A DNA stretch of 47,597 nt from positions 1 to 47,597 of the forward strand of contig NIVC01004389.1 of the NCBI GenBank assembly GCA_002269645.1. Reading direction: 5' to 3'. The position numbers were made by a program, and so were the translations under genes. Every line of letters starts with the position of its first letter. The first letter of the stretch is position 1. Under the pieces are notes generated by a model. That model was not told the DNA's origin. It was given only the letters and a program-made list of their open reading frames with translations, and ran no database searches. This stretch comes from Macrostomum lignano (taxonomy: Eukaryota). Of this stretch, positions 11,743 to 42,914 are shown piece after piece.

Positions 11743-12248
11743 GTAAAAGCGCTCCCACCACATAAAAATGACAACATCATTTGTCGATTATCGCGAAAAC
11801 TTTTCAATGAAAAATTACAAGATTTCTGCAGCTCAATTTTGTCATTAGCAAATCGTAGCCAAGCCTGTTAGAGGCTACGGGTTAGGGAAGAAGCGGCGGT
11901 ATGGGAGACATTATCGGCAAACGCACGCAGTGTAAACAAGGGCTCCTTCCGGGGTTGACTATTTGTTGATTTCTAAAGCCCGTACATGTAGTTACCCGAC
12001 TAAATGCACCTGCCGTATTTTCCTCATTGCATATTTGAATTTTGTAGTTATGCACTGCTCTCATATTCCATATAAGATTTTCTAGCTACTCTTTCTAGAA
12101 ATTTACTAAAATAATGCTTGATTTTTCCTGCAGACTTTTAACGCTTATTTTAAGTAGCATAATTAGCGTTTATCGCCGTTTTCTGCCATAGCTAGCGAAT
12201 TTCTACGACTTTATAATTGATCGGATTTTTTTTCACTCCAAACCGCAG

Positions 12249-15200: not shown

Positions 15201-18200
15201 TTTATTGGCACACACACTGGCAGTTTTATTGGCACACACACTGGCAGTATGATTGGCACACACACTGGCAGTTTGATTGGCACACACACTGGCAGTTTGA
15301 TTGGCACACACACTGGCAGTATGATTGGCACACACACTGGCAGTTTGATTGGCACACACACTGGCAGTTTGATTAGCACACACACTGGCAGTTTGATTGG
15401 CACACACACTGGCAGTTTGATTGGCACACACACTGGCAGTTTGATTGGCACACACACACTGGCAGTTTGATTGGCACACACACTGGCAGTTTGATTGGCA
15501 CACACACTGGCAGTTTGATTGGCACACACACTGGCAGTATGATTGGCACACACACTGGCAGTATGATTGGCACACACACTGGCAGTATGATTGGCACACA
15601 CACTGGCAGTTTTATTGGCACACACACTGGCAGTTTTATTGGCACACACACTGGCAGTATGATTGGCACACACACTGGCAGTTTGATTGGCACACACACT
15701 GGCAGTTTGATTGGCACACACACTGGCAGTATGATTGGCACACACACTGGCAGTTTGATTGGCACACACACTGGCAGTTTGATTAGCACACACACTGGCA
15801 GTTTGATTTGCACACACACTGGCAGTTTGATTGGCACACACACTGGCAGTTTGATTGGCACACACACACTGGCAGTTTGATTGGCACACACACTGGCAGT
15901 TTGATTGGCACACACACTGGCAGTTTGATTGGCACACACACACACTGGCAGTTTGATTGGCACACACACTGGCAGTTTGATTGGCACACACACTGGCAGT
16001 TTGATTGGCACACACACTGGCAGTTTGATTGGCACACACACTGGCAGTTTGATTGGCACACACACTGGCAGTTTGATTAGCACACACACTGGCAGTTTGA
16101 TTGGCACACACACTGGCAGTTTGATTGGCACACACACTGGCAGTTTGATTGGCACACACACACTGGCAGTTTGATTGGCACACACACTGGCAGTTTGATT
16201 GGCACACACACTGGCAGTTTGATTGGCACACACACACTGGCAGTTTGATTGGCACACACACTGGCAGTTTGATTGGCACACACACTGGCAGTTTTATTGG
16301 CACACACACTGGCAGTTTGATTGGCACACACACTGGCAGTTTGATTGGCACACACACACTGGCAGTTTGATTGGCACACACACTGGCAGTTTGATTGGCA
16401 CACACACTGGCAGTTTGATTGGCACACACACTGGCAGTTTGATTGGCACACACACTGGCAGTTTGATTGGCACACACACTGGCAGTTTTATTGGCACACA
16501 CACTGGCAGTTTGATTGGCACACACACTGGCAGTTTGATTGGCACACACACTGGCAGTTTGATTGGCACACACACACTGGCAGTTTGATTGGCACACACA
16601 CTGGCAGTTTGATTGGCACACACACTGGCAGTTTGATTGGCACACACACACTGGCAGTTTGATTGGCACACACACTGGCAGTTTGATTGGCACACACACT
16701 GGCAGTTTGATTGGCACACACACTGGCAGTTTGATTGGCACACACACTGGCAGTTTGATTGGCACACACACACTGGCAGTTTGATTGGCACACACACTGG
16801 CAGTTTGATTGGCACACACACTGGCAGTTTGATTGCCACACACACTGGCAGTTTGATTGGCACACACACACTGGCAGTTTGATTGGCACACACACTGGCA
16901 GTTTGATTAGCACACACACTGGCAGTTTGATTGGCACACACACTGGCAGTTTGATTGGCACACACACTGGCAGTTTGATTGGCACACACACTGGCAGTTT
17001 GATTGGCACACACACTGGCAGTATGATTGGCACACACACTGGCAGTTTGATTGGCACACACACTGGCAGTTTGATTGGCACACACACTGGCAGTTTGATT
17101 GGCACACACACTGGCAGTTTGATTGGCACACACACACTGGCAGTTTGATTGGCACACACACACTGGCAGTTTGATTGGCACACACACTGGCAGTTTGATT
17201 AGCACACACACTGGCAGTTTGATTGGCACACACACTGGCAATTTGATTGGCACACACACTGGCAGTTTGATTGGCACACACACACTGGCAGTTTGATTGG
17301 CACACACACTGGCAGTTTGATTAGCACACACACTGGCAGTTTGATTGGCACACACACTGACAGTTTGATTGGCACACACACGCTGGCAGTTTAATTGGCA
17401 CACACACACTGGCAGTTTGATTGGCACACACACTGGCAGTTTGATTAGCACACACACTGGCAGTTTGATTGGCACACACACTGACAGTGCCAGAAGCAGT
17501 GTTGGTGTTCGAGGTGAAAAGTTGGGGAGGGTGCAAGCATGAGAAATGAAATTATGATGGTAAGTCTGACAATGGACTTAAAATTTATTGATAAGTACAA
17601 GAGCCCTTGACTTGACTTGCCACCCCACGCGGCAAAAGCTACTCTTACATGTACTCAGCTCGCCCATTTCATGCCTAGCTTTCGGGAACAACCCCAAAAG
17701 TCTCTGGTTCTTTGGGCGGGCAGAAAAATCCTATAAAGAAGGAAAAAAGACGCTAAGCTGCACGAGATGGAGGCTTAAGGGAGGCTTTTGCTGTCCCCAG
17801 GTGCAGCCATCCCAGGTTTTCAATTTTTATACTTGTGCGCCATTCGTTGCTTTAAAACACGCGAACCCCGGCCTCCGCATCCGGGAGAGAGCCGTATCCC
17901 TGTCTCTGTGTCGGCCCGAAATTTAAAATCCCCCTTGGAGAGATTCTGGAGAGAGGAGAGGAGAGAGAGAGAGGTTGCCGCCGCTGCATAATACGGAGCA
18001 GCTGAGCAGCTGGGAGCGGAGTCGGGGGAGGAGAAGGAGATGAGTAAAGAGGACTCAACACCCCGATCTCCCCCCCCCCCACAGTTGCGTGCGACAGTTC
18101 CCTTAATCTTCTAGTGGGATCTCGGCCCACGACTGGGATTATCTTGCCGGAGAAAAATGGGATATAAATGTTTTCGGGAAGTCTTAGCTTCGTCTATTGA

Positions 18201-21200
18201 TACATCTGGCTCTGTATAGACCTGGGAGCGCAGTATTGCTGATCATGCGCCACGTCTAATTTGCCAGCCTGCACTGGAAACTCGTGTGAATTTTCAGCTC
18301 TTTTCATTGCACCAATACAAGGTGACGTCAAAAATACAATCTGGTCAATTTTAACAAAAACAAATTCGATCACAAGCCCTTGTCGTTCGTTCGACAGTCT
18401 AGAATCAGGTCCACGATTCTCATGGGTCTCATCTGGCTCCTGCAAAGCCTCCATTAACTGCCGCCAACCTTGCCACCACAGACAAAAGCTCCAGTACTTC
18501 GGCAAACGTATCTTGGATTAAATTCAATGCGTGTAAACCCCAAATGAGCTGCAAAAGGCTATATACGAGGTTTATTCAAAAAGTTCTTTTCGGTCCTTTG
18601 GCATTTATTTTTAGAAAGCGTTGTAAGCAGAATTTTAGCGATTTTACCAAGTTATGTCTATGGCCTAAACGTTCCTAGGGTTTTAAGTCTCAGTTTGCAA
18701 CTATGTTAGAGCAGCGAACATTTCTATCAGCTGCCACTCAATTTCTTGGCCATGGCTGAATCATTTTCAAAGCAAACGTTCGAAGCTTGATGAAGTTTCA
18801 GTTTCTGCAAGGAAAAAAGCCACCGGAAATGTTTAGGGAGCCTCAGCAAGTGCTTGGCAACTGTGCACCAACTGAGCAGACAGTTCGAAAATGGTACCGG
18901 CTGTTCGCTGAGGGAAGAGAGAGCGTTGAGGACAATGGCCGCTCTGGAAGGCCGATGACTGCAACCAAAGAGACTGTTGTGAAGAAAGTGCAAGAGCTCT
19001 TGGATGATGATCGGCGACGGACTTGCGAAGAGTTGGCAGAAGACGTTGGTGTGTCAGTAGGAAGCGTCCACACTATTCTGACTGAGCGTCTTCTCCTACA
19101 GAAAAAGTTCTGCAAGTGGGTGCCACACCTGCTGACAGGTGAGCAAAAGATGCAGCGAACTGTGGCTTCAAGCAGCCACCTGCGTCGGTTCCATCGAGAA
19201 GGGGAGGATTTTCTATCAAGAATTGTAGCTGGAGACGAGACGTGGGTTTACAGCTGGGATCCTGAGACAAAGGCCCAGTCTGCCGAATGGCTTCCAGCAC
19301 ATTCTCCAAGACCTCAGAAGGCCATCAGGAAGCAGGGCGCGATAAAGATCATGCACGTCATGTTTTTTGATTCCCAAGGAATCCTGCTGAACTGGGCAGT
19401 CCCACAAGGAACCACCGTCAATGGGGACTACTACAAGTGGATTCTGCAGGAGAAGCTGCGCCCAGCAATACGAAAGAAGCGCCCTGGTCTGCTGGAATCT
19501 GGCGTGATCCTGCTGCACGACAATGCGCCAGCACATCGCAAGCACAACGTCGTGGAACTCCTGAGCAAATGGGGCTGGGAAGTGCTCCAACATCCACCCT
19601 ATTCGCCTGATTTGTCGCCGTGCGACTTCTTCTTATTTCCATCTGTGAAGAAGCACCTTCGGGGCATTCGATTTGACAGCGTCGAGCACATCGAAGCTGC
19701 ATGCAATCAAGCTGTTCGCCAAACGGACGCGAGTGGTGTGAGTTCCGGAATCAGAGGCCTGGTAAATCGCTGGCAGAAGTGCAAAGACATTGGCGGTGAA
19801 TATGTTGAGTGACAGAATCATGTTAAGCAATCTAACAGTGTTTTCATAGTTCCAGTTGTTTTGTGTTCAGTTTTGTAGGGCACCGAAAAGAACTTTTTGA
19901 ATACACCTCGTATTTCCAAACTTTTATGGTGCTATTCTACTTCTGAATCATCAACCTAGAAACTGAAAACTTGTCAGAAATATTTTCGTCTACTGTGAGT
20001 AGCAATAGATGCACAGTTTTGTAGTGTAATATCAGAAGTCAAAATGCAAAATTTTTAATTCTAAATTCATCAATAATACAATCATAATTCATAATTGGAA
20101 ATTAAATTTCCAAATTTCAAATTAGAAATTCGAAATTCATAATGGACAATACATGGATAAAGTTTCGAGCTTGTGAAGCGCCTTGTCATGGAAACGCATT
20201 CCAGTCTCGATGCGGCACCCGGAGAAGCCGCCGTCGGCCCGCCTGCGCGGCCTGCTGCACCGGGCGGCCTACCTGGGCTCCACGCAGCTGGCGCTGGAGG
20301 CGCGGCCGAGTCGGGCAACGCGAATGGCCCTGGCTCAGGAGGCGGTCGTGCGCATCAAGGTGAGCCGGGCAGCGAGGCACATAGCGAAGTCTATAGTTGT
20401 TTACTGCTGTTCGGATGCGTTCAGCATTGAAGATCAACCGCCGGTACCTTTGAGACTGTTTTAGCACCTTTGAGACTGTTTTAGCACCTTTGGGACTGTT
20501 TTAGCACCTTTGGGACTGTTTTAGCACCTTTGGGACTGTTTTAGCACCTTTGGGACTGTTTTAGCACCTTTGGGACTGTTTTAGCACCTTTGGGATTGTT
20601 TTAGCACCTTTGGGACTGTTTTAGCACCTTTGGGACTGTTTTAGCACCTTTGAGACTGTTTTAGCACCTTGCTGCTGTTGGTGATTCATTGGTTAGTTCA
20701 ACCATCAGCTACAGTCGATTAAAGATTTCAGTTTGCCTGAAGCGCTGCTGTTTCTAATCAGCATATTACTAGTACTTTTAGTCCTACAAAGGTCAACAAT
20801 ATTTTCACGCTAATTTCTCTGCCACCACAGGCACCAGACGGCGAGAAGCAGCCCAGTGTGCCTGTAGATCTATTCGTGTCCATCGAACGCCTGATGGTGC
20901 TGAACCCGACATCCAGGCTGGCCATGATGGACCACGCCCTGCGGACGGTGACTCACACGGCCGACATGGACAACCTGCTGGTGCTCATGGTCAGGCGAGC
21001 CGGCTGCCCCACAGGGACTGCCGGCCCGTGCAAAGTGGTTTGCCACCTGTTCCACACAGACCAAGTGAGCAATAAGGGGACAGGGCAGCACACTGGCGCT
21101 GCTTCCGATTCTAGTGCTAAAGTACATTGGGTTCACTTCCTGGGCACGTACGTACTTGTCCGCGTGCATGCGGTAAATTAATAATTTGAATTGGCGCCAA

Positions 21201-21978
21201 TTCCACGCACCACACCTGCCAGGCCTCGCAGGTGGCGCACACTATTGGCTGCGCGTTCAACGCCGCCTACGCGCAATTCGTGCACCGCGGCGGCGCCGTG
21301 CCGCCAAAGACGACGCCGGGCAACGATGGCGACAGCGTCAGCGGCACCTCCGCTGTCAGAGTCGACTTCGACAACGACAACGACCAGGTTGACGACAGCG
21401 ACAACGGCTTGGAGGACACCGCGCCGTTAGAGGTGACAATCTATAAGGAGCGCGGCGAAGCACTCGGCATCGCCCTTGTCGATAGCGGCTGGGGCGCCCT
21501 GCTGCCGTCCGTCCTACTGGCCAACCTCCGGCCAGGCGGCCCGGCTGTTCGCTCCGGACAGCTCAGCGTCGGCGACTTTTTGCTGGCGGTGGACGGCACC
21601 AGTCTGGTCGGCCTGCCGCTGGCCGCCTGCAGACGTCGGCTTCGGGCCTGCCGCTCGGCCGCTACTGTCCGACTACGCGTACTGCCCCGGCCGCCCGTGT
21701 CCGAGGCCGTCATCCAGCGTTTGGATCCTCGCCGGCCGCTCGGCTTCAGCGTCCGCGACGGCGTCGTCTGCGCCCTGCTCCGCGGCGGCGTGGCCGAGCG
21801 CGGCGGCGTCCGAATCGGCCACCGGATAGTGGAGATCGACGGCCGGTCGGTGGCGGCCGCCCCGCACGACCGGATCGTGGCCGCCCTGGCCTCGGCTGTG
21901 GGCGAAATCCGACTGAGAACCATGCCGGAGGCGGTGTACAGACTGCTGACCGGGCTGGATTCGCCGCGATATGTTTGA
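12249..21978 (+). CDS. APBA-like (X11/Mint/lin-10): X11/Mint/LIN-10 (APBA family) adaptor: acidic N-terminal region, PTB, two PDZ domains; 5' start unresolved
   Basis: Phase-compatible GT-AG exons at 12249-12389 (phase 1-1, GSVGTDSSDAGDEG...CGKK), 20205-20359 (..GLLHRAAYLGSTQLALEARPSRATRMALAQEAVVRIK), 20831-21064 (APDGEKQPSVPVDLFVSIERLMVL..MMDHALRTVTHTADMDNLLVLMVRR..KVVCHLFHTDQ) and 21223-21978 (ASQVAHTIGCAFNAAYAQF, PDZ1, PDZ2, YRLLTGLDSPRYV*). These match the X11 motifs YLGSTQL, AQEAVSRIK, MMDHPLRTISYIAD and C-terminal YRLLTxQEQPxYI from recall. The first exon is assigned by splice phase only. Confidence 0.9.
12459..12589. repeat. 20-bp minisatellite (CTGTCAGATTCTACAAGACA family), left segment
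   Basis: Alternating CTGTCAGACTCTTTAAGATG / CTGTCAGATTCTACAGGACA units. Confidence 0.85.
12690..13064 (-). mobile_element. tRNA-derived CORE-type SINE, copy 1, with (ATT)n-like tail
   Basis: Minus strand: A-box/B-box head GTAGCCTAGTGGTCAGAGCG...GGTTCGATTCCC, then GTGTCCTTGAGCAAGACACTTAAC...CAGCTGTAAAATGGG resembling the CORE domain, then an AT-rich tail. Homologous to 28579-28890. Confidence 0.85.
13068..14370. repeat. 20-bp minisatellite (CACTGTCAGATTCTACAAGA), right segment, about 65 units
   Basis: Exact 20-bp periodicity visible across consecutive lines. Confidence 0.97.
14769..17487. repeat. 24-bp minisatellite (TTGGCACACACACTGGCAGTTTGA) with occasional extra CA
   Basis: Direct reading; source of the HTHWQFDW / CQSNCQCV / VPIKLPVC ORFs. 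Confidence 0.98.
18566..19910 (+). mobile_element. Mariner (DD34D) DNA transposon, 1345 bp, full length, inside the X11 intron
   Basis: TIRs CGAGGTTTATTCAAAAAGTTCTTTTCGGT (from 18566) and ACCGAAAAGAACTTTTTGAATACACCTCG (to 19910), one mismatch; TA on both sides (18564-65, 19911-12). Confidence 0.96.
18752..19812 (+). CDS. Mariner transposase; likely ATG at 18752 is out of frame by one missing base near 18780; long frame 18787-19812
   Basis: WVPHLL, VAGDETWV, LHDNAPAH and HPPYSPDLSPCDFFLF are present, with 34 residues between the second and third Asp. MAESFSKQT- followed by -RSLMKFQFLQGK gives a typical mariner N-terminus if one nucleotide is added. Confidence 0.92.
20446..20670. repeat. 20-bp intronic minisatellite (GCACCTTTGGGACTGTTTTA), about 11 units
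   Basis: Direct reading; lies in X11 intron 20360-20830. Confidence 0.95.
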
Positions 21979-22106: not shown

Positions 22107-23532
22107 TCTCCTCTCCTCTCCCCTCTTCTTCTCTCCTCTCCTCTCCTCTCCCCTCTTCTTCTCTCCTCTCCTCTCCTCTCCCCTCTTCTTCTCTCCTCTC
22201 CTCTCCTCTCCCCTCTTCTTCTCTCCTCTCCTCTCCTCTCCCCTCTTCTTCTCTCCTCTCCTCTCCTCTCCTCTGCTCTGCTCTGCTCTGCTCTCCTCTC
22301 CCCTCTTCTTCTCTTCTCTCCTCTCCTCTCCTCTGCTCTGCTCTGCTCTGCTCTCCTCTCCTCTCCTCTCCTCTCGCCTCCTCTCCTCTCCTCTGCTCTG
22401 CTCTCCTCTACTCTCCCCCTCTGCTCTGCTCTCCTCTGCTCTGCTCTGCTCTCCTCTCCTCTCCTCTCCTCTCCTCTCCTCTCCTCTCCTCTCGCCTCCT
22501 CTCCTCTCCTCTCCTCTCCTCTCCTCTCGCCTGCTCTCCTCTCCTCTCCTCTCCTCTCCTCTCCTCTTGCCTCCTCTCCTCTCCTCTCCTCTCGCCTCCT
22601 TTCCTCTCCTCTCCTCTCCTCTCCTCTCCTCACCTCCCCTCTCCTCTCCTTTCCTCTCCTCTCCTCTGCTCTGCTCTCCTCTCCTCTCCTCTCCTCTTCT
22701 CTCCTCTCCTCTCCTCTCATCTTCTCCTCTCCTCTCCTCTCCTCTTCTCTCCTCTCCTCTCCTCTCGCCTCCTCTCCTCTCCTCTCCTCTCCTCTCCTCT
22801 CCTTTCCTCTCCTCTCCTCTCCTCTCGCCTCCTCTCCTCTCCTCTCCTCTCCTCTCGCCTCCTCTCCTCTCCTCTGCTCTGCTCTGCTCTCCTCTCCTCT
22901 CCTCTCCTCTCCTCTCCTCTCCTCTCCTCTCCTCTCCTCTCCTCTCCTCTCGCCTCCTCTCCTCTCCTCTCCTCTCCTCTCGCCTCCTCTCCTCTCCTCT
23001 GCTCTGCTCTCCTCTCCTCTCCTCTCCTCTCCTCTCCTCTCCTCTCATCTTCTCCTCTCCTCTCCTCTCCTCTCCTCTCCTCTCCTCTCCTCTCCTCTCC
23101 TCTCCTCTCCTCTCCTCTCCTCTCCTCTCCTCTCCTCTCCTCTCCTCTCCTCTCCTCTCCTCTCGCCTCCTCTCCTCTCCTCTGCTCTGCTCTCCTCTCC
23201 TCTCCTCTCCTCTCCTCTCCTCTCCTCTCCTCTCCTCTCCTCTCCTCTCCTCTCATCTTCTCCTCTCCTCTCCTCTCCTCTCCTCTCCTCTCCTCTCCTC
23301 TCCTCTCCTCTCCTCTCCTCTCCTCTCCTCTCCTCTCCTCTCGCCTCCTCTCCTCTCCTCTCCTCTGCTCTGCTCTCCTCTCCTCTCCTCTCCTCTCCTC
23401 TCCTCTCCTCTCCTCTCATCTTCTCCTCTCCTCTCCTCTCCTCTCCTCTCCTCTCCTCTCCTCTCATCTTCTCCTCTCCTCTCCTCTCCTCTTCTCTCCT
23501 CTCCTCTCCTCCTCTGCTCTCCTCTCCTCTCT
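22107..23532. repeat. (CTCCT)n pentanucleotide microsatellite with CTGCT/CGCCT variants
   Basis: Direct reading; starts about 130 bp after the X11 stop codon. Confidence 0.98.
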
Positions 23533-24296
23533 TCAAAACGGCACGCCACGGCAGCTGGATTTTGCGATCCCGTCGGTTTTCAAACTTCCTCCCCAAATTT
23601 GATCTGTCCGATCCAAATAATTGCTTTGCGATCCTGTAGATACCGTCTGGTTGGGCATTGTTCAATTATGAAGAAATATTCGCATCCTTCTACTGCTAAG
23701 GTCGTAACGCTGAGTAGTATGCTGCGAGCAACACCTCGTATTCATCTGAGTTATTTTTGCTCAGCCAAAGAAGTCAGAAGCAAAAAATGCTTTTTTGGAA
23801 TTTTATGCTTGTTGCAATCCGAAACTGGAGAAGAAAGGCGCAACAGGTTTTCTTATAAAGGCCGGTAAGGAACGTATATTTATCGTTTTGCTAGGACAAC
23901 AGTAAATAGCATAATCTTTAGCGTGAGGCTACTTCTCAACTCTCAGTTCAAATCAGGCAAGCACCCTATCGAGGGCATGAATTTCCCTCTCTTTCGAGCC
24001 GCAAAAGTCGCCCCTATCGCTAGGGGTGCTCACTTTGACTGTTGCCGAGTATAGTGGTGGTGTAAATAGGCTCTTCTGAACTTTTCTTTCATTAAAAACA
24101 ACAATTATTTTGATGCCATTGTACATGTCTGCCTTCGTTTGCCCACTTATATTATAAATAGAATCATAATGCTTAACAATCAGCTGATTTTTGTTATTCA
24201 AATATTCTTAATTTATTCGTGGACTACTAAACCAAAATTAGGTCATGAGTTGGGGGACATTTCATATGCTCGAAGTTTTACAAGGTTGAAGTCATG

Positions 24297-25225
24297 GACA
24301 GCTAAAGCAGAGGGCCGCTGCACTTGCAGATCGTGCAGATTTCGCTGCGAAATGCACTGGCGAGATGGGAAGTTTCCAGTTATTCAGCACTGAATTCCTA
24401 ACATCTCACCTGCTGGACTCCCGAATTGCAGATGCAGCCAGCAGGTGTTTTGTCCGAGCTGCGCTCACAAGTTTATCAAGCTGCTTTTTCATGAACTGCT
24501 GCCGGAGACCGGCAAGCAAGCAAAGTTGCGGCGAAATTGCAGCCGCTCCTGTCTCTGCAGTGTTTTGTCTGGACGGATTTGTCTATGGCCAAACCCCACT
24601 CAGCGCTGTGCAATATGCAAATATTTGACAAAAAACACCTGCTGGCTGCATTTGCAATTCGGAAGTCCAGCAGGTGAGAAATTGGGAATTCAGTGCTGAA
24701 AAACTGAAAACTTCCCATCTCGCCAGTGCATTTCGCAGTGAAATTAGGGATTGCAAAATCCCGGTGTTTCGCGATCCCGTGATCAGAAAAATACAGATTT
24801 TTAAGCTTCTGGGTTGAAATTTCAAGGCAAAATGGCAAAATATGCGCTAAACGTATTTTTGCTTCATTTTCGATTGTTATAGAGATAGTTATCTTTTTGC
24901 AGATGAAAAACAGCATTATCTTGTGACGTATTTAAGTAAGTTAATAAGTAGTATAAAAAGTACTAATTAGTAGTAAAGATGCAAATGAAATATCAAAATT
25001 TACATTGGAATAAATTTCACATTTAAATCTGTGATGCGGGGTTTAAAAAAGGCGCCACGCTACGTGAGGCAATTAACGAAAATTAGCTCAGTATAATGAA
25101 CTAGCTGTGGGCCCAATTATGTTCATATTATAAAATTTTTTGTAAAAATAATAACGTGATTTCGAGATCCCGGGATTGCAATCCCTAAGCCAAATCTGCA
25201 CGGTTTGCGAGTGCAGTGTCCGGCC
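24297..25225. mobile_element. Foldback/MITE-like element with long inverted arms, copy 1, interrupted by a nested MITE
   Basis: Arm 24339-24454 is the roughly 90% identical reverse complement of 24627-24744. The right terminus resumes at 25188 (..AAATCTGCACGGTTTGCGAGTGCAG). A second copy lies at 31774-32148 in the opposite orientation. Confidence 0.8.
24745..25187. mobile_element. 443-bp MITE, probably hAT-derived
   Basis: Perfect 12-bp TIR TAGGGATTGCAA...TTGCAATCCCTA. Flanks AGTGAAAT (24737-44) and AGCCAAAT (25188-95) are degenerate copies of AGCGAAAT, the uninterrupted site in the sister element, consistent with an 8-bp TSD. Confidence 0.8.
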
Positions 25226-27605
25226 TTCTACTTGTGTTGTGCACGCTCGAAACTTATTGTAATCCTGAAAGTGACTTTTCGACGATACTTGGAGCTCATG
25301 AAATCTTGATCTCAAGAAAGCAGCCCATGATTTGGTGTGGAACCGATAGGCAGAATGGACTAACCAAAAAAATGCTTCTGCAAGCCCTTTACTGATTTTT
25401 TGATTTTCATGCCTTGAGGCGAAATTATGAAATGAATTATTCCAAAGAAAAAAAAGCAAAGACAAAATTCAGAAACCAGATATGGGCGAAATGCAACACC
25501 AGGAAATTCGACACTCGATTGTTTTGCATGTCAGTTGGCGGTGTGAGGCAGCATGTCAGACTCGGACATGTCCGCAAGCGTTGGGGCAGACATTCTGACA
25601 GCGATTCAGTGCACCAGATTCGAAACCAGTACGCTGTAACCACCTGAACAGTTCCGCGTCTTAGAGCTGAATTAAAACCTTGAATTAGAAATTACTAATG
25701 GAACGGTAATTCAAATGGTTGAATTAAAAGAGATAGAATATCTTATAGATAAGAGATAGAATTAAAAGAGGTAGAATTCAAATGATTAGCCGAGCATGCA
25801 CGTGAGCGCACCTGTGCTTGGAGAGAGACCCGAGGATCAAGGATAAACCCTGACCACATCATAGCAATGCTTGTCTGACAAGTTTCTCTTATTTAAGGAC
25901 TCAAGGCAGAAACCGAAGGCTTTGCTCTTCGTGAGACCTATCTGAATGAGTCAGGTCGCAAGTTCTCTGGCATAAGTCATTAATTAAGCTGAACGAGCCC
26001 AAACAGCAGAAATTTCGATTAGCTCGCAAGAAAAGCTTGTATACTAAAATCGTCTTTGGCTGACAAGACGCTGGCTGCTGAATTTTAGATTTTGTCTATT
26101 CTTTCCTACTGGTGACGAGTAGTAGGAAACAATATAATTGGCAATTAATATTTAATTCGATACGACTGCAAAGCAAAAAAATTGTTGGCAAAAAAGATTC
26201 GCAACTCGGACGGTGGGTGAAAAGGTAGAAAAAACTGCTTGATTTGGTTCGGCATTCTCGGATAAGCTTATTCATTTCCGTTTAACTCTGTCACGACATT
26301 CCATCGGCCTGCGCTGCATCAATTTTTTTCTATTCTACAAGATTTTTCTCTAGTTACAAGCGTATTTGATTAATTTGAATTAGGTCGTAGAATAATTAGA
26401 TTCAGTCCTATTTTTTAAATCTTCATTTAATTGACACGCTAATGCGAATTTTGCGTTCAGTCGTTCGTGAATCTAATTACGATTTGATAAAAAAATTTCT
26501 GAATAAATCTTTTGTCAAAATGTCAAAATCGTAATATTTAGAGTTCACGAAAGGAATAGTCGTCCTGATTTCGGTAGTTTTTCTTTCAAACGGTAGTTTG
26601 CAACGTTCTATTAATAGTTGCAACGCGTCTGTGTGTTTAATAATTTTAGTTTTTAGTTCATTTCCAGAACTTCCTTCGCTAGTACAGCCTAGTGGTCTGA
26701 TTAGAATCTCGGTTTGGCTCTGCTCGTGCAATTAACACTTTTGAGGCCCAACCCCCAACCCCAAGGCACAGTGAAGTGTACATGCCTAACGATAAATTAA
26801 GTTAGGGCCGCTGTACACTGGCTTGTGTGCTCAGGGGAGTCGGCGGAATAGGCAGTAATGCGCCTCACAATGTCGCTTAATGTGCGCCAGGGTGCACACA
26901 GTACTCTAAAGTCGATCTTATCAATTTAATTCAAATGTACGTATCCACATTGCAAACCCATTGGAGGGTTAACATTAGCTTGTGTACATGCTATCGATTA
27001 GTTTTCTTGCCTAACCTTCTCTCCAACTGATGCCCCAGTTTATTGTATCGCTGCAATCTGTATGTCAACCTCTCAAACCCTAAAGCGGTCTGCGTCTGCC
27101 CCCTCCCTCAACTCAGCCAAGCTAATTGTCTTAATCGATTGAAAAGTGTCGGAATTGAATTTGCGAGTTGGAAACTTCAACCAGATTATATATTTCTTCG
27201 AAAGGCATACCTAGCATCAAACAGTGAAATGAAAGAAACGAACCTTTACTAGTGCAATAAATTTAAAACGTCACGTCAGGAATTTTGTTAAATTTTAAAA
27301 ATCTTTCCCAGCAGCTCAGTGCCATGCCATTATACCATATTTTCTAAGAAGTGTTTCTTCAAAATGAAAAATAACCAGACTCAAACGCAAGGCGCAATAG
27401 TTTAATGAACTCAAAATCAAATCTCGTGATCTGCATCGCTAGAGTTCTTTAACTTATAGGCGTCTATTTGTATTCAAAGTTCAGTTGGACCGAAACCGAC
27501 AGAGCTGGGAAGAGAGGAGCGCATATCAATTCGATCTTTGATGCCAAAATGGTCTGTAACTGATTCTCATCGACGGGAGTTTAGACGCCATTTTTTAAAA
27601 CAACT

Positions 27606-28135
27606 TTACTCGTCGCCATCTTCAAATCCAGAGTCGCGCTTTCCAAATGAGCTCGACCATCGCTGACGTCGCTTGCCGAAGGAGCTCGACCACATCTGGC
27701 GCTGTCGCTTACCGAAGGAGCTCGACCACACCTGGGGCTGGCGCTTTCCGAACGAGCTCGACCAGCGCTGCTGGCGCTTTCCGAACGAGCTCGACCACAC
27801 CTGGGGCTGGCGCTTTCCGAACGAGCTCGACCAGCGCTGCTGGCGCTTCGAATATGATGGATAGGCTGCTAACGAACGGGCCAAGTCATCATTGTTGTAG
27901 ATATCCCGTCGAGCTGTTGATGAAGCTACAGAAAGGATAAAAAGTACTTTACTATGCTGTGTTTGCATAAATTTCGAACCTCAAGTTTAATTATTAAATG
28001 GTGATTACTTTAGATACGAAAAAGTATATATAATTGGTAGACAGTAGGCCTTGTCAACAACAGACCTTCGCTAGCAACGATGACAGACGCGGAGATTAGC
28101 GACCCGACTAGCGCAGCCAACTGTAGAAGATGCAT
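27606..28135 (-). CDS. Neuropeptide precursor (129 aa): signal peptide plus six xWSSSF-amide peptides
   Basis: Coding exon 28135-28066 encodes MHLLQLAALVGSLISASVIVASE. Phase-1 intron 28065-27926 (GTCTGT...TTTTTATCCTTTCTGTAG). Exon 27925-27606 encodes ASSTARRDIYNNDDLARSLAAYPSYSKR, then QQRWSSSFGKR, QPQVWSSSFGKR, QQRWSSSFGKR, QPQVWSSSFGKR, QRQMWSSSFGKR, RQRWSSSFGKR and DSGFEDGDE*. A probable 5'UTR intron spans 28237-28152 (GTAAGT...TTTCAG). Confidence 0.92.
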
Positions 28136-28578
28136 CTTCTTAGGCGCCTACCTGAAAGCGTTAAGAAAATACGAGTAGTAGCAACGGAGTAATCTGACTC
28201 AAGTCCCTGTCTGCGACAGTCTGATTTTTAAACTTACAGCAAGTTGCTTTCACAAAAGATTGAAATGATAAATAGGGATAGACAGAGAGAAGAGGCAGTC
28301 AGTCGGTTGGCCGAGGGTTCGCGCGAGAGAGACTATGCGCAGAGGTGGGCAATGCAAATTTAGCAGGACTGTCGAGGAGAGAGGGGAAGCATTTGGGAGA
28401 GGACTGGTCTCCGAGTCGCTCCTCCAATGGGATTTTCTCTAGCTCAGCTCTGACATTTTCTTCATAAAGTTTGAACTCGTACATGGAGGTAGATATGGAG
28501 TCTCAATAAGTGCTCCATATTCATGGGTCCACCCCTCAGACATTGTCTAACTCAACAATGTATAGGAAACAAGAGTTT

Positions 28579-28890
28579 GTAGACTAGTGGTTAGAGCACC
28601 AGACTCACAACCGAAAGGTCTAGGGTTCGATTCTCGACCCACTTGGAACAATTTGTGTCCTTGAGCAAGACACTGAACTCTGCATTGCTTCAGTTCACCC
28701 AGCTGTAAAATGGGTGCCAGCATTAGCTGGGGTAATTTAGGGTGTGTGTGGCGACCCCCCTGCAGTTCTTGGACTGAACAGCCGTACGCAGCCTTCAGAT
28801 GCGCCGCGCAATAGCTGCGACTGAGCTGCCGGTTGCACGTCTGCCTATTAGGGCAGGTATAATTAATTATTATCATTATTATTACTAACT
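28579..28890 (+). mobile_element. tRNA-derived CORE-type SINE, copy 2
   Basis: GTAGACTAGTGGTTAGAGC...GGTTCGATTCTC head, GTGTCCTTGAGCAAGACACTGAAC...CAGCTGTAAAATGGG, body matching 12779-13062 in reverse, (ATT)n tail. Confidence 0.85.
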
Positions 28891-30109: not shown

Positions 30110-30566
30110 AAAGATAGATTGATAGACTGGGTCATAGACAACACGCAGATAGGTTGATAGGTTGGGCCATTAGACAACACGCAGATAGGTTGATAGGTTG
30201 GGCCATTAGACAACACGCAGATAGGTTGATAGGTTGGGCCATTAGACAACACGCAGATAGGTTGATAGGTTGGGCCATTAGACAACACGCAGATAGGTTG
30301 ATAGGTTGGGTCATTAGACAACGCGCAGATAGGTTGATAGGTTGGGCCATTAGACAACACGCAGATAGGTTGACAGGTTGGGCCATAGACAACACGCAGA
30401 TAGGTTGATAGGTTGGGTCATTAGACAACGCGCAGATAGGTTGACAGGTTGGGCCATAGACAACACGCAGATAGGTTGAGCCATAGACAACACGCATATA
30501 GAATGATACTTGGGCCATAGACAACACGCAGATAGGTTGATACTTTGGCCATGGACAACACGCAGA
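30110..30566. repeat. 36-bp minisatellite (TTAGACAACACGCAGATAGGTTGATAGGTTGGGCCA)
   Basis: Direct reading; about 12 units, degenerating at both ends. Confidence 0.93.
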
Positions 30567-31405
30567 TTCCTGACTCAGAAACTCAAGTGAGAGAGTAATT
30601 AATTAGAATTAGCAACAGAAGTCTAAGGCCTCGCCTCGGCCTAGAAACGCAGTCCTCAGCCGTTCCTAGGCCATAGAAACGAAATCAAGTGGGGATTATA
30701 ATATTTAATTGCCGCAGCCAGCGGGAGGAAATGAGACTAAGCCTTGGCCATATAGACTATAAAGGCTATAAAGCTCTATAAAGCCGAATATTCTGTGTAA
30801 GATCAGAAAAGCTTCAGTTGTGTGTAGCTTGGTACCGAATATGGGTGACATCTCTGCTGCTGTCGTTGTTGAAGCCCCGGATATGGAGATTTCGCCGGAC
30901 CTACTGGATTTCATCCTGAAGCCTGGGGATAACGCTGGACCTATTGAAGCCGCTCTTCAATTGGACGTCATTCATTGGCAACCGTCGTCAAGGACGCCGT
31001 GGCCGTGGTTGCTCCCTCTGACACTGGACGCTACTCGAATCAGTCTCCGTAAGAGTTGAGAGTTAGATTTTTCACTTTCGATCCCCATTTGTTGCTATTC
31101 AGTGTTGTGAAACCGGTCTTGTTTCAAAATTACAACAGCATCTTTGTGTTTCTACCATAGACAATTATTTCTTGGCCTCCAAGAAACGCCTGATGGGAGC
31201 CTCAACTCATTTAAAGAATGTTTTTTAGCCATAGACAATTATTTCTTGGAGTCCAAGAAATGAAAATACACAGAGAAGATAGGCAGCTGGCCGGGCCAAA
31301 GCGGGGATTAAACATATTTTCTAAGTTTGGATGCTTAATTCTAGGCTTGCTGATCTCTCAGTCGAGTTTCTCAGTCAGAAATCTGTGTTGTCTATGGCCC
31401 AACCC
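30545..31405. mobile_element. Putative non-autonomous element with about 70-bp imperfect inverted ends
   Basis: 30547-30614 (GGCCATGGACAACACGCAGATTCCTGACTCAGAAACTC...) matches the reverse complement of 31332-31400 (GGCCATAGACAACACAGATTTCTGACTGAGAAACTC...). No TSD identified. Confidence 0.6.
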
Positions 31406-31773: not shown

Positions 31774-32148
31774 AAGTTTTTCAGCACTGAACTCCCGATA
31801 TCTCAACTGAACTTCCAATGATTTGTTTTTCTGCACAGCGCTGAGTGGGGTTTGGCCATAGACAAATCCGTCCAGACAAAACACTGCAGAGACAGGAGCG
31901 GCTGGAATTTCGCCGCAACTTTGCTTGCTTGCCGGTCTCCGGCAGCAGTTCATGAAAAAGCAGCTTGATAAACTTGTGAGCGCAGCTCGGACAAAACACC
32001 TGCTGGCTGAATCTGCAATTCGGGAGTCCAGCAGGTGAGGCATTGGGGATTCAGTGCTGAAGAACTGGAAACTTCCCACCTCGCCAGTGCAGTTCGCAGC
32101 GAAATCTGCACGGTTTTCGAGTGCAGCGGCCCTCTGCTTCAGCTGTCC
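31774..32148. mobile_element. Foldback/MITE-like element, copy 2, inverted relative to copy 1, one arm partly deleted
   Basis: Reverse complement aligns with 24297-24610; spacer nearly identical. Confidence 0.85.
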
Positions 32149-33105: not shown

Positions 33106-33834
33106 TCAGGCAAATGCGGTGCCGCAAATGATAGTGTGATCAACGCCGCATCGAGTCCACTGCACCCGGCAGGCCAGGGACACCTGCAGCGGGAAGCACT
33201 GGTTGTCGTCGTGACCGAGGCCCAGACTGCCCGACCGTTGATCTCCCCAGGTGTACAGCGAGCCGCTATTGGTGACTGCGGCAAAATGGTACATGCCCGC
33301 GTCCAGCTGGACAATGCGCACATCTTTAGCCAACTGCGTCCGGCCGAACAGACCGTCCGGAATTGGCCTTGGCTCGGCCAGCTGGGTGACGTCCGGCCCG
33401 AGGCCAAGCCGGCCGTAGCCCCAGACCCAGACTCGGCCGCAGCGGGTCAGCAGGGCGCACATTGAGCCGGCCGCGGCCACCCGGTCAACTTGCTGATTGG
33501 CTGATAGAACTGAGTGCATCACGTGATCTAATCGGATAGGCCGGTCCACCTGCCGCATTGCGATTACATTGTTGTTGCCATTACTTAATGTCTTAGTGTC
33601 TGTCTGTGTCTGTCTTAGTGTCTGTCTTGGTGTCTGTCTTGGTGTCTGTCTTGGTGCCTGTCTGTGTCTGTCTTAGTGTCTGTCTTGGTGTCTGTCTTGG
33701 TGTCTGTCTGTGTCTGTCTTGGTGTCTGTCTTAGTGTCTGTCTTGGTGTCTGTCTTGATGTCTTTCTTAGTGTTTGTCTTGGTGTCTGTCCGTCTGTGTC
33801 TGTCTGTCTGTATGTGTGTCTGTCTGTCTGTCCA

Positions 33835-33900
<66 letters not shown>

Positions 33901-33902
33901 CA

Positions 33903-33984
<82 letters not shown>

Positions 33985-35930
33985 CATCTGTCTGTCTGTC
34001 TGCCTGTCTGTCTGTCCGTCTGTCTGTGTGTCTGTCTGTCTGTCTGTCCGTCCGTCTGTCTGTCTCACAGTGTCAGTCAGACTCCCAGACAGCTGACCTG
34101 CAGCGCATCGGTGCCCAGCTGTCCGTACTCGGAGTTGCCCCAGCCGTAGACGCAGCCGTCCTCGCCCAGCGCCAGCACGGTGTCGGCTCGGCAGGCCAGA
34201 TCGGCCACCGGGGCACCGACGTCAACCAGCTGAAATCGGTCGGAGTTGTCGAAGCCGCCCAAGCCGAGCTGGCCGTCGGCGCCGAGGCCGCAGCTGTAGA
34301 CTCGGCCGTCGGCAGTCAGCAGGTAGGTGCTGTCCTGGCCGCAGACCAGCCGCTGCACAGACTCGGGCGGGCAGGGCAGCGCCAGCCTGGCCACGGCAGC
34401 GGATTCTCCGCCGGCCGGCCGGCCGCACTGTCCGAAGGCATTGTTGCCGAACGCGTAGGCGCCGTGACTGGTCACCAGCAGGGAGTGCGCCCGGCCGGCC
34501 GACAAGCGCAGCAGGCGGTACCGGCCGGACGCCAGCTCGGCCGGGTGCACCGGAAGGCGGACCTGAGTCGGCCGGAGCACCAGACGGTGCCTGGCGACGC
34601 CTGAAGACGACGAGTTTAATGACGACGACAATAATATGTCCTGGGCGGGGTCGGCGCCGTCGGAGACTCTGGTTTGCAGCGGCCCCAACTGGCCGTCGTT
34701 ATTGGCGCCGCAGGCCATCAGGATGCCGCGGTTGGCGCCGCGGCGGCAGGCCAGCAGGGTGAAGCCGTAGCCGGCGGCGCCATCTACGACGCTGAGGCCG
34801 CGAGACGACAATTCGGCTAGACGGGCGGGGGCCAGCACCTGCGCGGTGGGTGGCGAGGGCGGAGCTAATGTCAGTAGAACGACCAGGGTTTTTCGAAGGC
34901 TCAAATTTAACACAAAACCAGCTGACTTAATATATGTCAAAAGTCATTACTAATTGTCAGGAGGGATTAGCATGTGTCATGGGATCTGCATGTGTCAGGA
35001 GGGATCAGCATGTGTCATGGGATCTGCATGTGTCACGAGGGATCAGCATGTGTCATGGGATCTCCATGTGTCAGAAAGGAATCAACGTGTCAGGAGGGAT
35101 AAGCATGTGTCAGAAAGGAATCAACATGTGTCAGGAGGGATCAGCATGAATCAGGAGGGATCAGCATGTGTCTGGAGGAATCAGCATGTGTCAGGAGGAA
35201 TCAGCATGTATCAGGAGGGATCAGCATGTGTCAGGAGGGATCAGCATGTATCAGGAGTGATCAGCATGTGTCAGGAGGGATCAGCATGTATCAGGAGTGA
35301 TCAGCATGTGTCAGGAGGGATCAGCATGTATCAGGAGGGATCAGCATGTGTCAGGAGGGATCAGCATGTATCAGGAGTGATCAGCATGTGTCTGGAGGGA
35401 TCAAAATGTGTCAGGAGGGATCAGCATGTGTCAGGAGGGATCAGCATGTGTCAGAAGGGATCAGCATGTGTCAGGAGGGATCAGCATGTGTCAGGAGGGA
35501 TCAGCATGTGTCGGAAGGGATCAGCATGTGTCAGGAGGGATCAGCATGTGTCAGAAGGGATCAGTATGTGTCAGGAGGGATTACTACCTGACAGGGTTCA
35601 GCAGTCAGAGATTTAACCGACCTGTTCACGCAGCGGCCTGCCTGGCGTGGGCTGGGCGAACCGGGCGATGCCCAGGGCGCCGGTCACCGGCCAGCCGCAG
35701 GCGTACAGCCGCTGCCTGGCCGACGTCGACCGGCGACCGGCGGTCAAATCGAATTCCGTAGTGGCGCGCTCGATACGCCGCCTGACTATTGATTTGCATC
35801 GGCGCGGATGATTTGACGCCAGCGCCTGGCGCAGGCAGCGAGCGATAGCGCCGCCACTTCCGCTGCAGTGAAACTGATTGTGATTGAGGCATCAGTAATA
35901 TTGCAATGGCTGGGCTTCATTACCAACCAT
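33106..35930 (-). CDS. RCC1L: RCC1-like protein, RCC1L/WBSCR16 type (mitochondrial); start codon uncertain
   Basis: Phase-0 exons: about 35862-35622 (..RLYACGWPVTGALGIARF..), 34838-34098 (..GAAGYGFTLLAC..GANNDGQLG..WGNSEYGQLG) and 33549-33106 (VWGYGRLGLGP..IPDGLFG..GMYHFAAVTNSGSLYTWG..FPLQV..CGVDHTIICGTAFA*). These match RCC1L motifs from recall (FVWGFSFSGALG, ACGYGFTLL, WGNSEY, CGVDH). Possible 7-nt first exon ATGGTTG at 35930-35924. Confidence 0.87.
33591..34066. repeat. Intronic (GTCT)n microsatellite preceded by 12-bp GTCTGTCTTGGT units
   Basis: Direct reading; fills RCC1L intron 33550-34097. Confidence 0.96.
34950..35582. repeat. 20-bp intronic minisatellite (TCAGCATGTGTCAGGAGGGA)
   Basis: Direct reading; fills RCC1L intron 34839-35621. 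Confidence 0.96.
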
Positions 35931-35978
35931 GTCAATAGACTGAAATAGGCCTCGATAATATCGATCCCTACTCAGCGA

Positions 35979-36700
35979 AATCTACCCACATCCAATCTAC
36001 ATGAGAATCTACCTTCATTTAATCTACAGAAGAATCTGCCCATACGAATCTACAGTAGAATCTACCCATATCCATTCTACAGGAGAATCTACCCATATCC
36101 ATTCTATAGGAGAATCTACCCGCATCCAATCTACAAGAGAATCTACCCATATCCATTCTATAGGAGAATCTACCCATATCCATTCTACAGGAGAATCTAC
36201 CCATATCCATTCTACAGGAAAATCTACCCGCCTCCAATTTACAGGAGAATCTACCCATATCCATTCTACAGGAGAATCTACCCATAACCAATCTACAGGA
36301 GAATCTACCCGCATCCAATCTACAGGAGAATCTACTCATATCCATTCTATAGGAGAATCTACTCATATCCATTCTATAGGAGAATCTACCCATATCAATT
36401 CTATAGGAGAATCTACTCATATCCAATCTACAGGAGAATCTACCCATATCCATTCTACAGGAGAATCTACCCATAACCAATCTACAGGAGAATCTACCCA
36501 CATCCAATCTACAGGAGGATCTACCCACATCCAATCTACAGGAGGATCTACCCACATCCAATCTACAGGAGGATCTACCCACATCCAATCTACAGGAGGA
36601 TCTACCCACATCCAATCTACAGGAGGATCTACCCACATCCAATCTACAGGAGGATCTACCCACATCCAATCTACAGGAGGATCTACTCACATGATTCTAC
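35979..36700. repeat. 27-bp minisatellite (GAGAATCTACCCATATCCATTCTACAG), homogenised variant at the right end
   Basis: Direct reading; begins about 50 bp upstream of the RCC1L 5' end. Confidence 0.95.
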
Positions 36701-41500: not shown

Positions 41501-42914
41501 CTTTTCATAGCACTCACAATTAAGTCATGAAGAGTAAGGAGCTCTTCATTCGGCCGGTACTTCTCTATCGTGGCAATAGAACGACGAACAAACCCTTCCA
41601 TCACATCTAAAGAGTCATCCACAGACAGTGGGTTGCCATCTTCGTCTCGCCAACAATATGTTGAAAGAAATCGCGCAGATAAAAAAGTGTCCTCAGGAAA
41701 AATAGACAAGTGAAGATACCGTTCCTTTTGCTCTTCATCTAGATCGTCAATACTAACTAGAATGGCATCTATGATGCTTCCATACTCATAATCACCCAGC
41801 TCTAAGTCGACTTTCTTAAAAAGATCAGTTTTAAACTTTTTCAAATATCTCTCGAATTGAGAGAGTCGGCCACGAAGAAGGCCACCGAAGATGGAAACAA
41901 TAAAAGGATTTCCTTTGCACTTGGAATGAAGCCTTCGAACACGCTCCATGTCTTCATCGTTGAACGAATCAGAGACTTGACCAGGTGAAACTTCGCTGTT
42001 GATAATCTAGTAAGAAGCTTAGAAGTCAATTCTTCGGGTAAACCTTCATCAACGGAGATTTTCATGCATCGCTGCGCATCTCCAGGCTGAATTTTGCTGA
42101 AAATATCGGCCTTTCTTGATGTAACAACGATTCTTGCTTGAACATTGAAATAGCGCAAAATTTTTGGCTCCCAAACGTCATCTAGAACGATAAGTCCGCA
42201 CGGGTACTTTTCTAGCATGATTTTGCGAAACAAATTTTTTGCGTCATCAAGGCTTGTTGGAGGCGACGCGCGCAGCGTAGGATCCAAACGGATGCAAATG
42301 TTCTGCATCTTAGCCAGGAGCATCGACTCCAATTCGTCGGTGCGCAGGTTGCCTATTGTGAACCAAAATACTCGATTGAAAAAATAGGAGGCAATTGGAC
42401 TTCCGTCAGAGGCCTTGCCTCTTATTGCTTGAGAAACAACTACCGACTTTCCAGCACCGCCGTGGCCTTTCACGAGAATCCAGCCCCCATCAGAGCGGAC
42501 CGATAGCTTTACCAAGCTTTCCTTGAGTTCTGCCACGTACTTAAGCTCAATGTTACCCACTGGAGTGATAGGAATACCACCTTCGATGAAGACGCCTTCG
42601 TAATCTTTAGTTGACTTAGTCAGATAAATTTGCGGTTTTTCACGGAAATTAGCCAACTCCTTTGACAGAAAATCGTAAGTAGGTTCTAGACTTGAAATGA
42701 GACAGTCGAATGTTCTCACATCATTTTTGTCCACAAGAATATCCACCAATGTGCTAGTCTGTCTATCTGTACTTCCAGCTCTGTTAATTATCTGCTTCTC
42801 CTCAGGGGAAATGAGACCAAAGCTTAACAGAGAATCTTCGATGTCGTGAAAATTGACATCTCGAACCAGCGCACCCTTCAGTGCCATTAGGGCAGCCTTT
42901 TGTCGCAGTTCCAT
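38590..42914 (-). CDS. APAF1-like: Apaf-1-like CARD / NB-ARC / WD40 apoptosome protein, intronless, about 1441 aa, with one frameshift at about 42007 (assembly error or pseudogene)
   Basis: N-terminal CARD-like helices (ALVRDVNFHDIEDSLLSFGLIS..STLVDILVDK). Walker A GHGGAGKS, Walker B LIVLDDVW, IVVTSR, CKGNP (GxP) and LHDL (MHD-like) are present, followed by a long beta-propeller-like C-terminus. ORFs 42914-41841 and 41949-38590 join as ..KLLT-[AG]-IINSEVSPG..DMERVRRLHSKCKGNP with one base missing. Confidence 0.88.

Follow-up and report, generated by a model that had tools for sequence, protein, structure and literature searches.

A predicted two-exon precursor of six WSSSF-amide peptides in the flatworm Macrostomum lignano and its likeness to molluscan Wx3Yamide precursors

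The sequence examined is contig NIVC01004389.1 of Macrostomum lignano (assembly GCA_002269645.1), a stretch of 47,597 nucleotides (nt) that is called the window throughout. On its minus strand a mechanically called open reading frame (ORF), 27606-27968, encodes 120 amino acids (aa) and carries six copies of WSSSFGKR. An earlier reading made from the letters alone (here the sequence-only reading) had placed six WSSSF peptides at this locus and had proposed that they belong to a neuropeptide precursor whose signal peptide is encoded by a hidden upstream exon. All six copies do lie in this ORF, in a single frame. A six-frame scan of the 47.6-kb window found WSSSF nowhere outside the precursor and found no second cluster of at least four G-[KR]-[KR] sites. 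Upstream of the copies, ATG 28135 opens a 70-nt hydrophobic coding stretch that ends AAG/GTCTGT (a slash marks a splice junction or cleavage point), and an acceptor with a pyrimidine tract, TTATCCTTTCTGTAG/CT, terminates at 27926. Joining 28066 to 27925, the predicted splice, keeps the frame and yields a product of 129 aa, exactly as the sequence-only reading had written it: MHLLQLAALVGSLISASVIVASEASSTARRDIYNNDDLARSLAAYPSYSKR-[QQRWSSSFGKR-QPQVWSSSFGKR-QQRWSSSFGKR-QPQVWSSSFGKR-QRQMWSSSFGKR-RQRWSSSFGKR]-DSGFEDGDE, followed by a stop.

All parts of the predicted gene are on the minus strand. Coding exon 1 (28066..28135) ends in phase 1 and encodes the putative signal peptide, MHLLQLAALVGSLISASVIVASE(A), for which IVA/SE, VAS/EA and SEA/SS are (-3,-1) cleavage candidates. 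Its start codon stands in the context AAGAAGATGC, with A at -3, and an in-frame TAG at 28150-28148, 15 nt 5' of the ATG, closes the frame upstream. The predicted intron (27926..28065) spans 140 nt from GTCTGT to TTATCCTTTCTGTAG and holds ATG 27968, with which the 120-aa ORF begins. Exon 2 opens with an N-terminal pro-region (27843..27925), (A)SSTARR-DIYNNDDLARSLAAYPSYS-KR, in which an RR site and a KR site flank a possible acidic linker peptide of 19 residues. The six peptide copies follow, and the ORF closes with the tail DSGFEDGDE and a TAA stop (27606..27635). The sequence-only reading had described acidic spacers; the pro-region (DIYNNDD...) and the C-terminal tail are indeed acidic, but there are no spacers, as the copies abut directly.

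For the splice sites, we listed all GT..AG pairs that would join ATG 28135 to the frame of the peptides with no intervening stop codon. The 28066/27925 pair is the sole in-frame pair that has an AAG/GT donor together with a strong pyrimidine-tract acceptor. The GC content changes sharply at the predicted junctions: it is 0.54 in exon 1, drops to 0.31 across the 140 nt of the intron and rises to 0.58 in exon 2. By a heuristic calculation (not SignalP), the longest apolar run of the spliced N-terminus is 17 residues and its best 15-residue hydropathy is 2.37, which is on par with the signal peptides of mollusc precursors taken as controls. With the best splice pair, this compositional step, and a start context and signal peptide better than those of the ATG in the intron, the two-exon model with the hidden signal-peptide exon proposed earlier has good support in silico.

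Each repeat unit is 33 or 36 nt long. When the six copies are compared, differences in the eight-codon core WSSSFGKR fall at four nucleotide sites; each is a third codon position, and every change is synonymous (TCG/TCC/TCA, TTC/TTT, GGA/GGT/GGC and CGC/CGA). The core records at least six substitution events; silent changes make up 15 of the 72 possible single changes (21%), which gives a probability of ~8e-5 if the events are independent. The N-terminal parts of the peptides vary in their amino acids (QQR, QPQV, QRQM, RQR). Since variation in the core is synonymous only, the data suggest selection on the peptide rather than a satellite that is open by chance. A silent core beside varying N-terminal halves is the pattern expected of a neuropeptide precursor and argues for selection on the C-terminal core and the processing signals.

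Each copy ends F-G-K-R and is preceded by KR. Five copies begin with Gln and the remaining one with Arg, as had been read before. Copies 1 (27810..27842) and 3 (27741..27773) have the same sequence, QQRWSSSF-GKR, with the predicted product pQQRWSSSF-NH2 (pQ, pyroglutamate, pGlu; expected [M+H]+ 1007.469). Copies 2 (27774..27809) and 4 (27705..27740) read QPQVWSSSF-GKR, predicted to give pQPQVWSSSF-NH2 (1047.489); the core of copy 4 has the synonymous variants TCC, GGT and CGA. Copy 5, QRQMWSSSF-GKR (27669..27704), would give pQRQMWSSSF-NH2 (1138.510). Copy 6, RQRWSSSF-GKR (27636..27668), follows KR and so forms a tribasic KRR. The product assigned to it by the sequence-only reading, RQRWSSSF-NH2 (1052.538), is encoded at this KR-flanked copy, but cleavage after KRR may yield pQRWSSSF-NH2 (879.411) instead.

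We estimate at roughly 80% the probability that the locus is a genuine, unannotated two-exon M. lignano gene for a 129-aa prepropeptide, the precursor of secreted amidated peptides made by standard processing. The processing steps are those of established prohormone biochemistry. Exon 1 would supply a signal peptide that signal peptidase removes, and exon 2 the six directly abutting x(3-4)-W-S-S-S-F-G-K-R units between acidic end pieces. A prohormone convertase would cleave at the KR/RR sites, a carboxypeptidase would remove the basic residues, peptidylglycine alpha-amidating activity would turn the C-terminal Gly into an amide, and N-terminal Gln would cyclise to pyroglutamate. The expected products are two copies each of pQQRWSSSFa and pQPQVWSSSFa, one of pQRQMWSSSFa and one of (R)QRWSSSFa. 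Neurons or endocrine-like cells would release them from dense-core vesicles, and they would act on a receptor, most likely a G protein-coupled receptor (GPCR), for which the conserved WSSSF-amide C-terminus is the likely binding core.

The window ORF was run as a HMMER query against 1.84 billion cluster representatives in an exhaustive search, which gave 55 matches. Fifteen of the best 20 are mollusc precursors of the form x-x-x-W-x-x-x-Y-G-K-R, and the mollusc matches come from Haliotis rubra, H. asinina, Batillaria, Littorina, Dreissena, Mya and Potamilus. Most of the 55 match through the KR...GKR periodicity and were set aside as relatives, among them allatostatin-A-type YxFGLa, enterin HSFVa, nematode PLGTMRFa and myomodulin-like precursors and a small number of repeat proteins that are not peptide precursors. 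Word-indexed protein searches, made with the spliced protein and with its alignment to the corresponding region of UPI0007A1322A, returned nothing or only a nematode nlp-7-type protein, and Pfam gave only a sub-threshold "Mucin-like" low-complexity match.

By sequence, UPI0007A1322A (P0004 among the matches) is the only clear homologue found and is closer than the mollusc precursors. It is a chimeric gene model of 1305 aa, fused to a recombinase/retroelement-like N-terminal part that the M. lignano precursor lacks. Its C-terminal part reads KKR-DGQRWSSGFGKR-AGQRWSSGFGKR-... and holds seven in-frame copies of (A/P/D)(G/D)QRWS(S/N)GFGKR (six QRWSSGFGKR and one QRWSNGFGKR), then frameshifted copies. 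The two precursors share the core QRWSS(S/G)F-GKR, with 71% identity over the repeat region; in both, the copies abut directly, and "D..LAR.L" stands ahead of the first copy as it does in the M. lignano pro-region. They differ in that UPI0007A1322A has Gly at -2 where the M. lignano peptides have Ser, and in that its peptides start A/P/D-G/D-Q and so have no N-terminal pGlu. A tblastn comparison of UPI0007A1322A with the window matched the peptide region and nothing else, and so gave no link between this model and M. lignano; exact look-ups of it in assemblies brought up no DNA. Since the UPI0007A1322A peptides lack N-terminal Gln, what this comparison shows as conserved is QRWSS(S/G)F-amide; the pGlu cap is not. 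Another W-x3-F-amide pattern is seen in P0035, a 306-aa JGI/IMG metagenome protein with copies of NPW(V/L/Y)GGFGKR and NQPWAYGFGKR, which could be a further Wx3Y/F-amide-type relative outside the molluscs.

The Wx3Yamide family was named in oysters by Stewart et al. 2014 (PMC4200219), who already suspected a lophotrochozoan origin for it. The scallop neuropeptidome paper (PMC5996578) gives SNKWSIAYamide, LRQGWNIAYamide and QQGWHIAYamide as members and credits the family to Stewart et al. 2014. A 2021 oyster study describes the physiological function of Wx3Yamide as little known, and the name occurs in no further paper of the searched literature beyond these three texts. Like the flatworm peptides, the family is orphan, with no known receptor or function. 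The examples that we compared are Haliotis rubra XP_046558594.1, Littorina saxatilis KAK7099168.1, Mya arenaria XP_052801122.1 and Dreissena polymorpha KAH3891038.1.

The flatworm and mollusc precursors are alike in being multi-copy, with mostly 8-residue peptides, W at -5 and KR/GKR processing, and in Haliotis the copies abut directly, as in the flatworm. The predicted pQQRWSSSFa and the Haliotis pQQGWHSDYa are of equal length, eight residues; each opens with QQ, carries W as its fourth residue and closes at the eighth with an aromatic amide. One mollusc precursor has QQGWHSGFGKR, to be compared with QRWSSGFGKR of UPI0007A1322A. W stands at -5 in 200 of the 208 amidation sites of 19 mollusc precursors, and all six flatworm copies read W-S-S-S-F-G. 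The modal mollusc length is 8 (109/136) and a QQ start is found in 67 of 200 copies; the flatworm peptides have 8 or 9 residues and start QQ, QP, QR or RQ. The phyla differ, and so do several residues: before W the flatworm has R, V or M and the molluscs G; the flatworm interior is S-S-S where x-(A/T/V)-(T/M) is typical of molluscs; and the flatworm has no counterpart of the bivalve-type single-copy peptide KRLPGWxVYYGKR. The C-terminal residue is Phe in all six flatworm copies and Tyr in 97% of mollusc copies; the mollusc copies ending in Phe are 4 of 200, namely QQGWHSGF, QQGWHSHF and QQGWYGHF in one precursor (P0008) and LQAWLTTF in another (P0038).

In a permutation test, the processing residues and the composition were held fixed and the order of the eight peptide residues was permuted identically in all copies, in 150 versions. 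Against the 19 Wx3Yamide precursors the real order scored a mean of 79.0 bits and the permuted versions a mean of 5.5, and none of the 150 reached the real score. The corresponding values were 41.9 and 12.3 bits for allatostatin-A-type precursors (6 of 150 reached the real score), 50.0 and 17.8 for other families (2 of 150) and 43.4 and 5.9 for nlp-7-type precursors (0 of 150). The permutations that came near the real score against the Wx3Yamide set were exactly those that retained W at 4 and F at 8, and the match therefore depends on the W-x3-aromatic order. We also built a log-odds family profile from 200 mollusc copies. Under it the flatworm peptides score +3.4 to +7.9 bits, values that are equalled by 4.5e-5 to 4e-4 of random 8-mers, and peptides of other families score -12 to -21 bits.

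The exon layout is shared as well. In three of the mollusc genes, exon 1 encodes the signal peptide only and ends in phase 1 (Haliotis 91 nt, Littorina 85 nt, Mya 61 nt), and a single second exon encodes the rest; the flatworm model, with a 70-nt phase-1 exon and a predicted intron, has the same two coding exons. By analogy the mollusc layout supports the predicted flatworm intron and is consistent with common ancestry. Phase-1 introns after the signal peptide are common in genes for secreted proteins, so the shared layout is weak evidence for homology. The mollusc signal-peptide introns are very long (Haliotis 22 kb, Littorina 36.6 kb, Mya 37.6 kb) compared with 140 nt in the flatworm model.

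Its motif (literally W-x3-F-amide), peptide length, exon layout and the organisation of the precursor all make the predicted gene a W-x3-aromatic-amide precursor comparable in kind to molluscan Wx3Yamide, and it is plausibly the first flatworm Wx3Y/F-amide gene. The sequence-only reading had held that the peptides fit no known family and may define an undescribed system. That claim is not supported, given the order-specific likeness to the best-matching Wx3Yamide precursors and the common exon layout. Two of its narrower exclusions stand: the peptides are not RFamide or FMRFamide-like, as the C-terminus is Ser-Phe-amide and not Arg-Phe-amide in all copies, nor MIP/allatostatin-B (W-x6-W-amide), as each peptide has one Trp and a C-terminal Phe. 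On true orthology with molluscan Wx3Yamide we judge the chances to be even; homology is not demonstrable from 8-mers.

Several observations weigh against this interpretation. As regards the gene itself, the window is very repeat-rich, and many of its satellites yield long ORFs in several frames; the precursor sits between inverted copies of a foldback-like repeat; the donor GTCTGT deviates at +3 and +4 from the usual GTRAGT; and the only closer relative, UPI0007A1322A, is a chimeric model. As regards family membership, the flatworm peptides score below the 5th percentile of the mollusc family (10.5 bits; median 22), their Phe end and S-S-S interior are atypical, the similarity involves about four informative positions in an 8-mer, the flatworm and mollusc precursors share no similarity outside the repeats, and the retrievable passages of the planarian prohormone tables hold no counterpart.

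The alternative that survives best is that the precursor is real and specific to Macrostomum or to flatworms, its W-x3-aromatic-amide shape having converged with that of the mollusc Wx3Yamides; this corresponds to the new system that the sequence-only reading had in mind. Most of the points of family membership just given speak for it. Short amidated peptides also converge readily: nematode nlp-7 peptides share an order-specific ...SSSF-amide tail, which shows that tails of this sort arise more than once. Against convergence, an unbiased search over the 1.84 billion proteins puts Wx3Yamide first and every other multi-copy amidated family below it; the two groups have in common a length of 8 residues, a start with QQ, W at -5, spacer-free tandem copies (in Haliotis), the exon layout and the intron phase; and both phyla are lophotrochozoan, in keeping with the origin that the family's authors suspected. 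We regard a lineage-specific origin as a substantial possibility, at somewhat less than an even chance.

The nematode peptides bear on the same question. Two nematode HMMER matches with DPR(F/L/M)FSS(A/S)FGKR are nlp-7-type. A precursor of this type in Mesorhabditis spiculigera is CAJ0571716.1, with DPRFFSSSFGKR, and in Haemonchus contortus the nlp-7 peptides ...DPRFSSMSFa and ...DPRLFSTAFa were detected by mass spectrometry (PMC8153747). Like the flatworm peptides these are multi-copy and amidated, end in S-x-S-F-amide (once exactly ...SSSF-amide) and have an aromatic residue at -5 or -6, and the similarity is order-specific in the permutation test. They differ in having no Trp (F or L where the flatworm has W), in a conserved D-P-R motif that is absent from the flatworm peptides, and in greater length and acidic N-termini. 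Their HMMER E-values, 1e-7 to 1e-4, are no better than those of unrelated multi-copy families, and under the Wx3Y profile they score -12 to -14, compared with +3.4 to +7.9 for the flatworm peptides. We tentatively suggest, at just short of even odds, that WSSSFamide and QRWSSGFamide are the first non-molluscan members of the Wx3Yamide family and part of an ancient spiralian signalling system, which at the far end could be protostome-wide and include NLP-7.

We consider it improbable that the cells expressing the predicted secreted amidated precursor are non-neural, for example secretory cells of glands, the reproductive system or the epidermis, and that its peptides act as pheromones, in seminal fluid or in defence. 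The sequence itself does not indicate a cell type, and non-neuronal secretory cells use the same peptide-processing pathway. Nevertheless, short tandem peptides capped by pGlu and amide whose C-terminal core is strictly conserved typify neuropeptide precursors, and the mollusc look-alikes came from transcriptomes and peptidomes of ganglia.

A gene of one exon that starts at ATG 27968, with the 140-nt "intron" retained as coding sequence or untranslated region (UTR) and MQTQHSKVLFILSVASSTA serving as a short signal peptide, appears very unlikely. The 120-aa ORF is open from this ATG, and its N-terminus has a 12-residue apolar run and (-3,-1) sites. The ATG, however, has T at -3 and lies within the AT-rich stretch (31% GC) between coding blocks of 54% and 58% GC, and the best 15-residue hydropathy of this form is 1.06; the hydrophobic run is merely the translated pyrimidine tract of a strong acceptor. 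Upstream, a far better signal peptide is encoded by an ORF that ends exactly at AAG/GT in the correct phase, and the mollusc relatives all have a separate phase-1 signal-peptide exon.

Very improbable, finally, is a non-functional 33/36-nt minisatellite that is open by chance, or a decayed pseudogene, in a repeat-rich contig: the satellites of the window do produce long ORFs, the opposite strand of the repeat is open too, and the near-identity of copies 1-3 in DNA suggests recent duplication of the unit, but unit lengths are multiples of three, differences in the core are all silent while flanking residues change, the processing sites are complete and matched by a signal-peptide exon in the right phase with good splice sites, the peptide is conserved in the diverged homologue UPI0007A1322A, and the likeness to an established peptide family is specific.

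The predicted gene appears to be unannotated and undescribed, although an earlier description in McVeigh 2009 or Koziol 2016 is possible. Neither the 129-aa spliced protein nor the 120-aa ORF is present in a collection of 15 billion proteins, nor is any gene recorded with such a product, which supports the idea of the sequence-only reading that the precursor could be missed. WSSSF, SSSFamide, WSSGF and QRWSS occur in no relevant searchable paper text, a coverage that does not extend to the flatworm catalogues of McVeigh 2009 and Koziol 2016. In the 12 kb of supplementary text of a paper that draws on the Koziol set, the motif has no match. The retrievable passages of the planarian prohormone tables (Collins 2010), which do not cover the full 97-kb table, list neither a WSS nor a W-x3-F family.

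Transgenesis and RNA interference (RNAi) are available in the laboratory flatworm M. lignano, and the precursor is missing from its protein annotation. If the two-exon precursor is real, it would add a peptide system to this model and would be a concrete case of short first exons hiding neuropeptide genes from screens based on ORFs or annotation. It would also offer a possible flatworm counterpart to the Wx3Yamides, orphan since 2014, whose receptor might then be identified in a flatworm amenable to genetic work; a shared receptor would merge two orphan observations into one spiralian signalling system. If the peptides are lineage-specific, they would be one more among many clade-restricted multi-copy peptides, useful and unsurprising. 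The predicted precursor is not a categorically new system and is a reasonable lead for deorphanising a spiralian peptide family.

Around the predicted gene several minor features were seen. On the minus strand at 28152..28170, 17 nt upstream of the start codon, a pyrimidine tract and AG (ATTTTCTTAACGCTTTCAG/G; TTTCTTAACGCTTTCAG/G) form a possible 3' splice acceptor, which could receive a 5' UTR exon or a trans-spliced leader. Past the stop, the nearest canonical-variant poly(A) signal is ATTAAA at 27401..27406 (-), ~200 nt away, and AATACA stands at 27474 (-); both are pattern matches only. A tRNA-like stretch (GGTGCTCTAACCACT...) at ~28547-28640 (-), ~400 nt upstream of the precursor start, is suggestive of a tRNA-derived short interspersed element; ARAGORN and Rfam made no call there, and Rfam and tRNA scans of the whole window were empty. 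The inverted repeat that flanks the precursor gene has arms of 317 nt at 24296-24612 and 31832-32148, 95% complementary and 7.2 kb apart. Its left arm has an internal 113-nt palindrome (24339-24451 against 24632-24744) and looks like a foldback element or a miniature inverted-repeat transposable element (MITE). The precursor gene may lie within a composite mobile unit or may just stand between two insertions.

Elsewhere on the contig, positions 1-10300, the first fifth, are filled by a 662-bp satellite in 16 head-to-tail copies, nearly all ~100% identical, which accounts for the flat composition profile at the contig start. Micro- and minisatellites are dense at 11121-17488, 20446-20670, 22107-23531, 30112-30567 and 33597-36686, with a 16-nt unit repeated 39 times, a 20-nt unit 65 times, a 24-nt unit 112 times, TCTCC 288 times, a 36-nt unit 13 times, TGTC 119 times, a second 20-nt unit 32 times and a 27-nt unit 26 times; several of them generate spurious long ORFs in more than one frame. 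The ORF of a mariner/Tc1-type transposase (domains HTH_48, Transposase_1 and DDE_3) lies at 18787-19812 (+).

At 38590-42914 (-) there is an intronless Apaf-1-like gene (CARD, NB-ARC, APAF1_C, WD40) with a long ORF at 38590-41949. Compared with its annotated paralogue in M. lignano, PAA53960.1, the gene is broken into two ORFs near 42000 by a frameshift of 1 nt (...KLLT/EIINSEV...), which may reflect either a pseudogenised copy or an assembly indel. The gene was tried as a yardstick for M. lignano introns and set aside, the gap between its ORFs being this frameshift and no intron. M. lignano proteins including PAA53960.1 are in its cluster at 90% identity or more, which supports the flatworm origin of the window; outside the flatworms its best relative is APAF1 of fish, with 25% identity. 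GC-rich exons of two further proteins were also seen: one or more at 21232-21978 (+), encoding a protein with two PDZ domains, and those of an RCC1-like-repeat protein at 33106-33558 and 34077-34940 (-), with the TGTC microsatellite between them.

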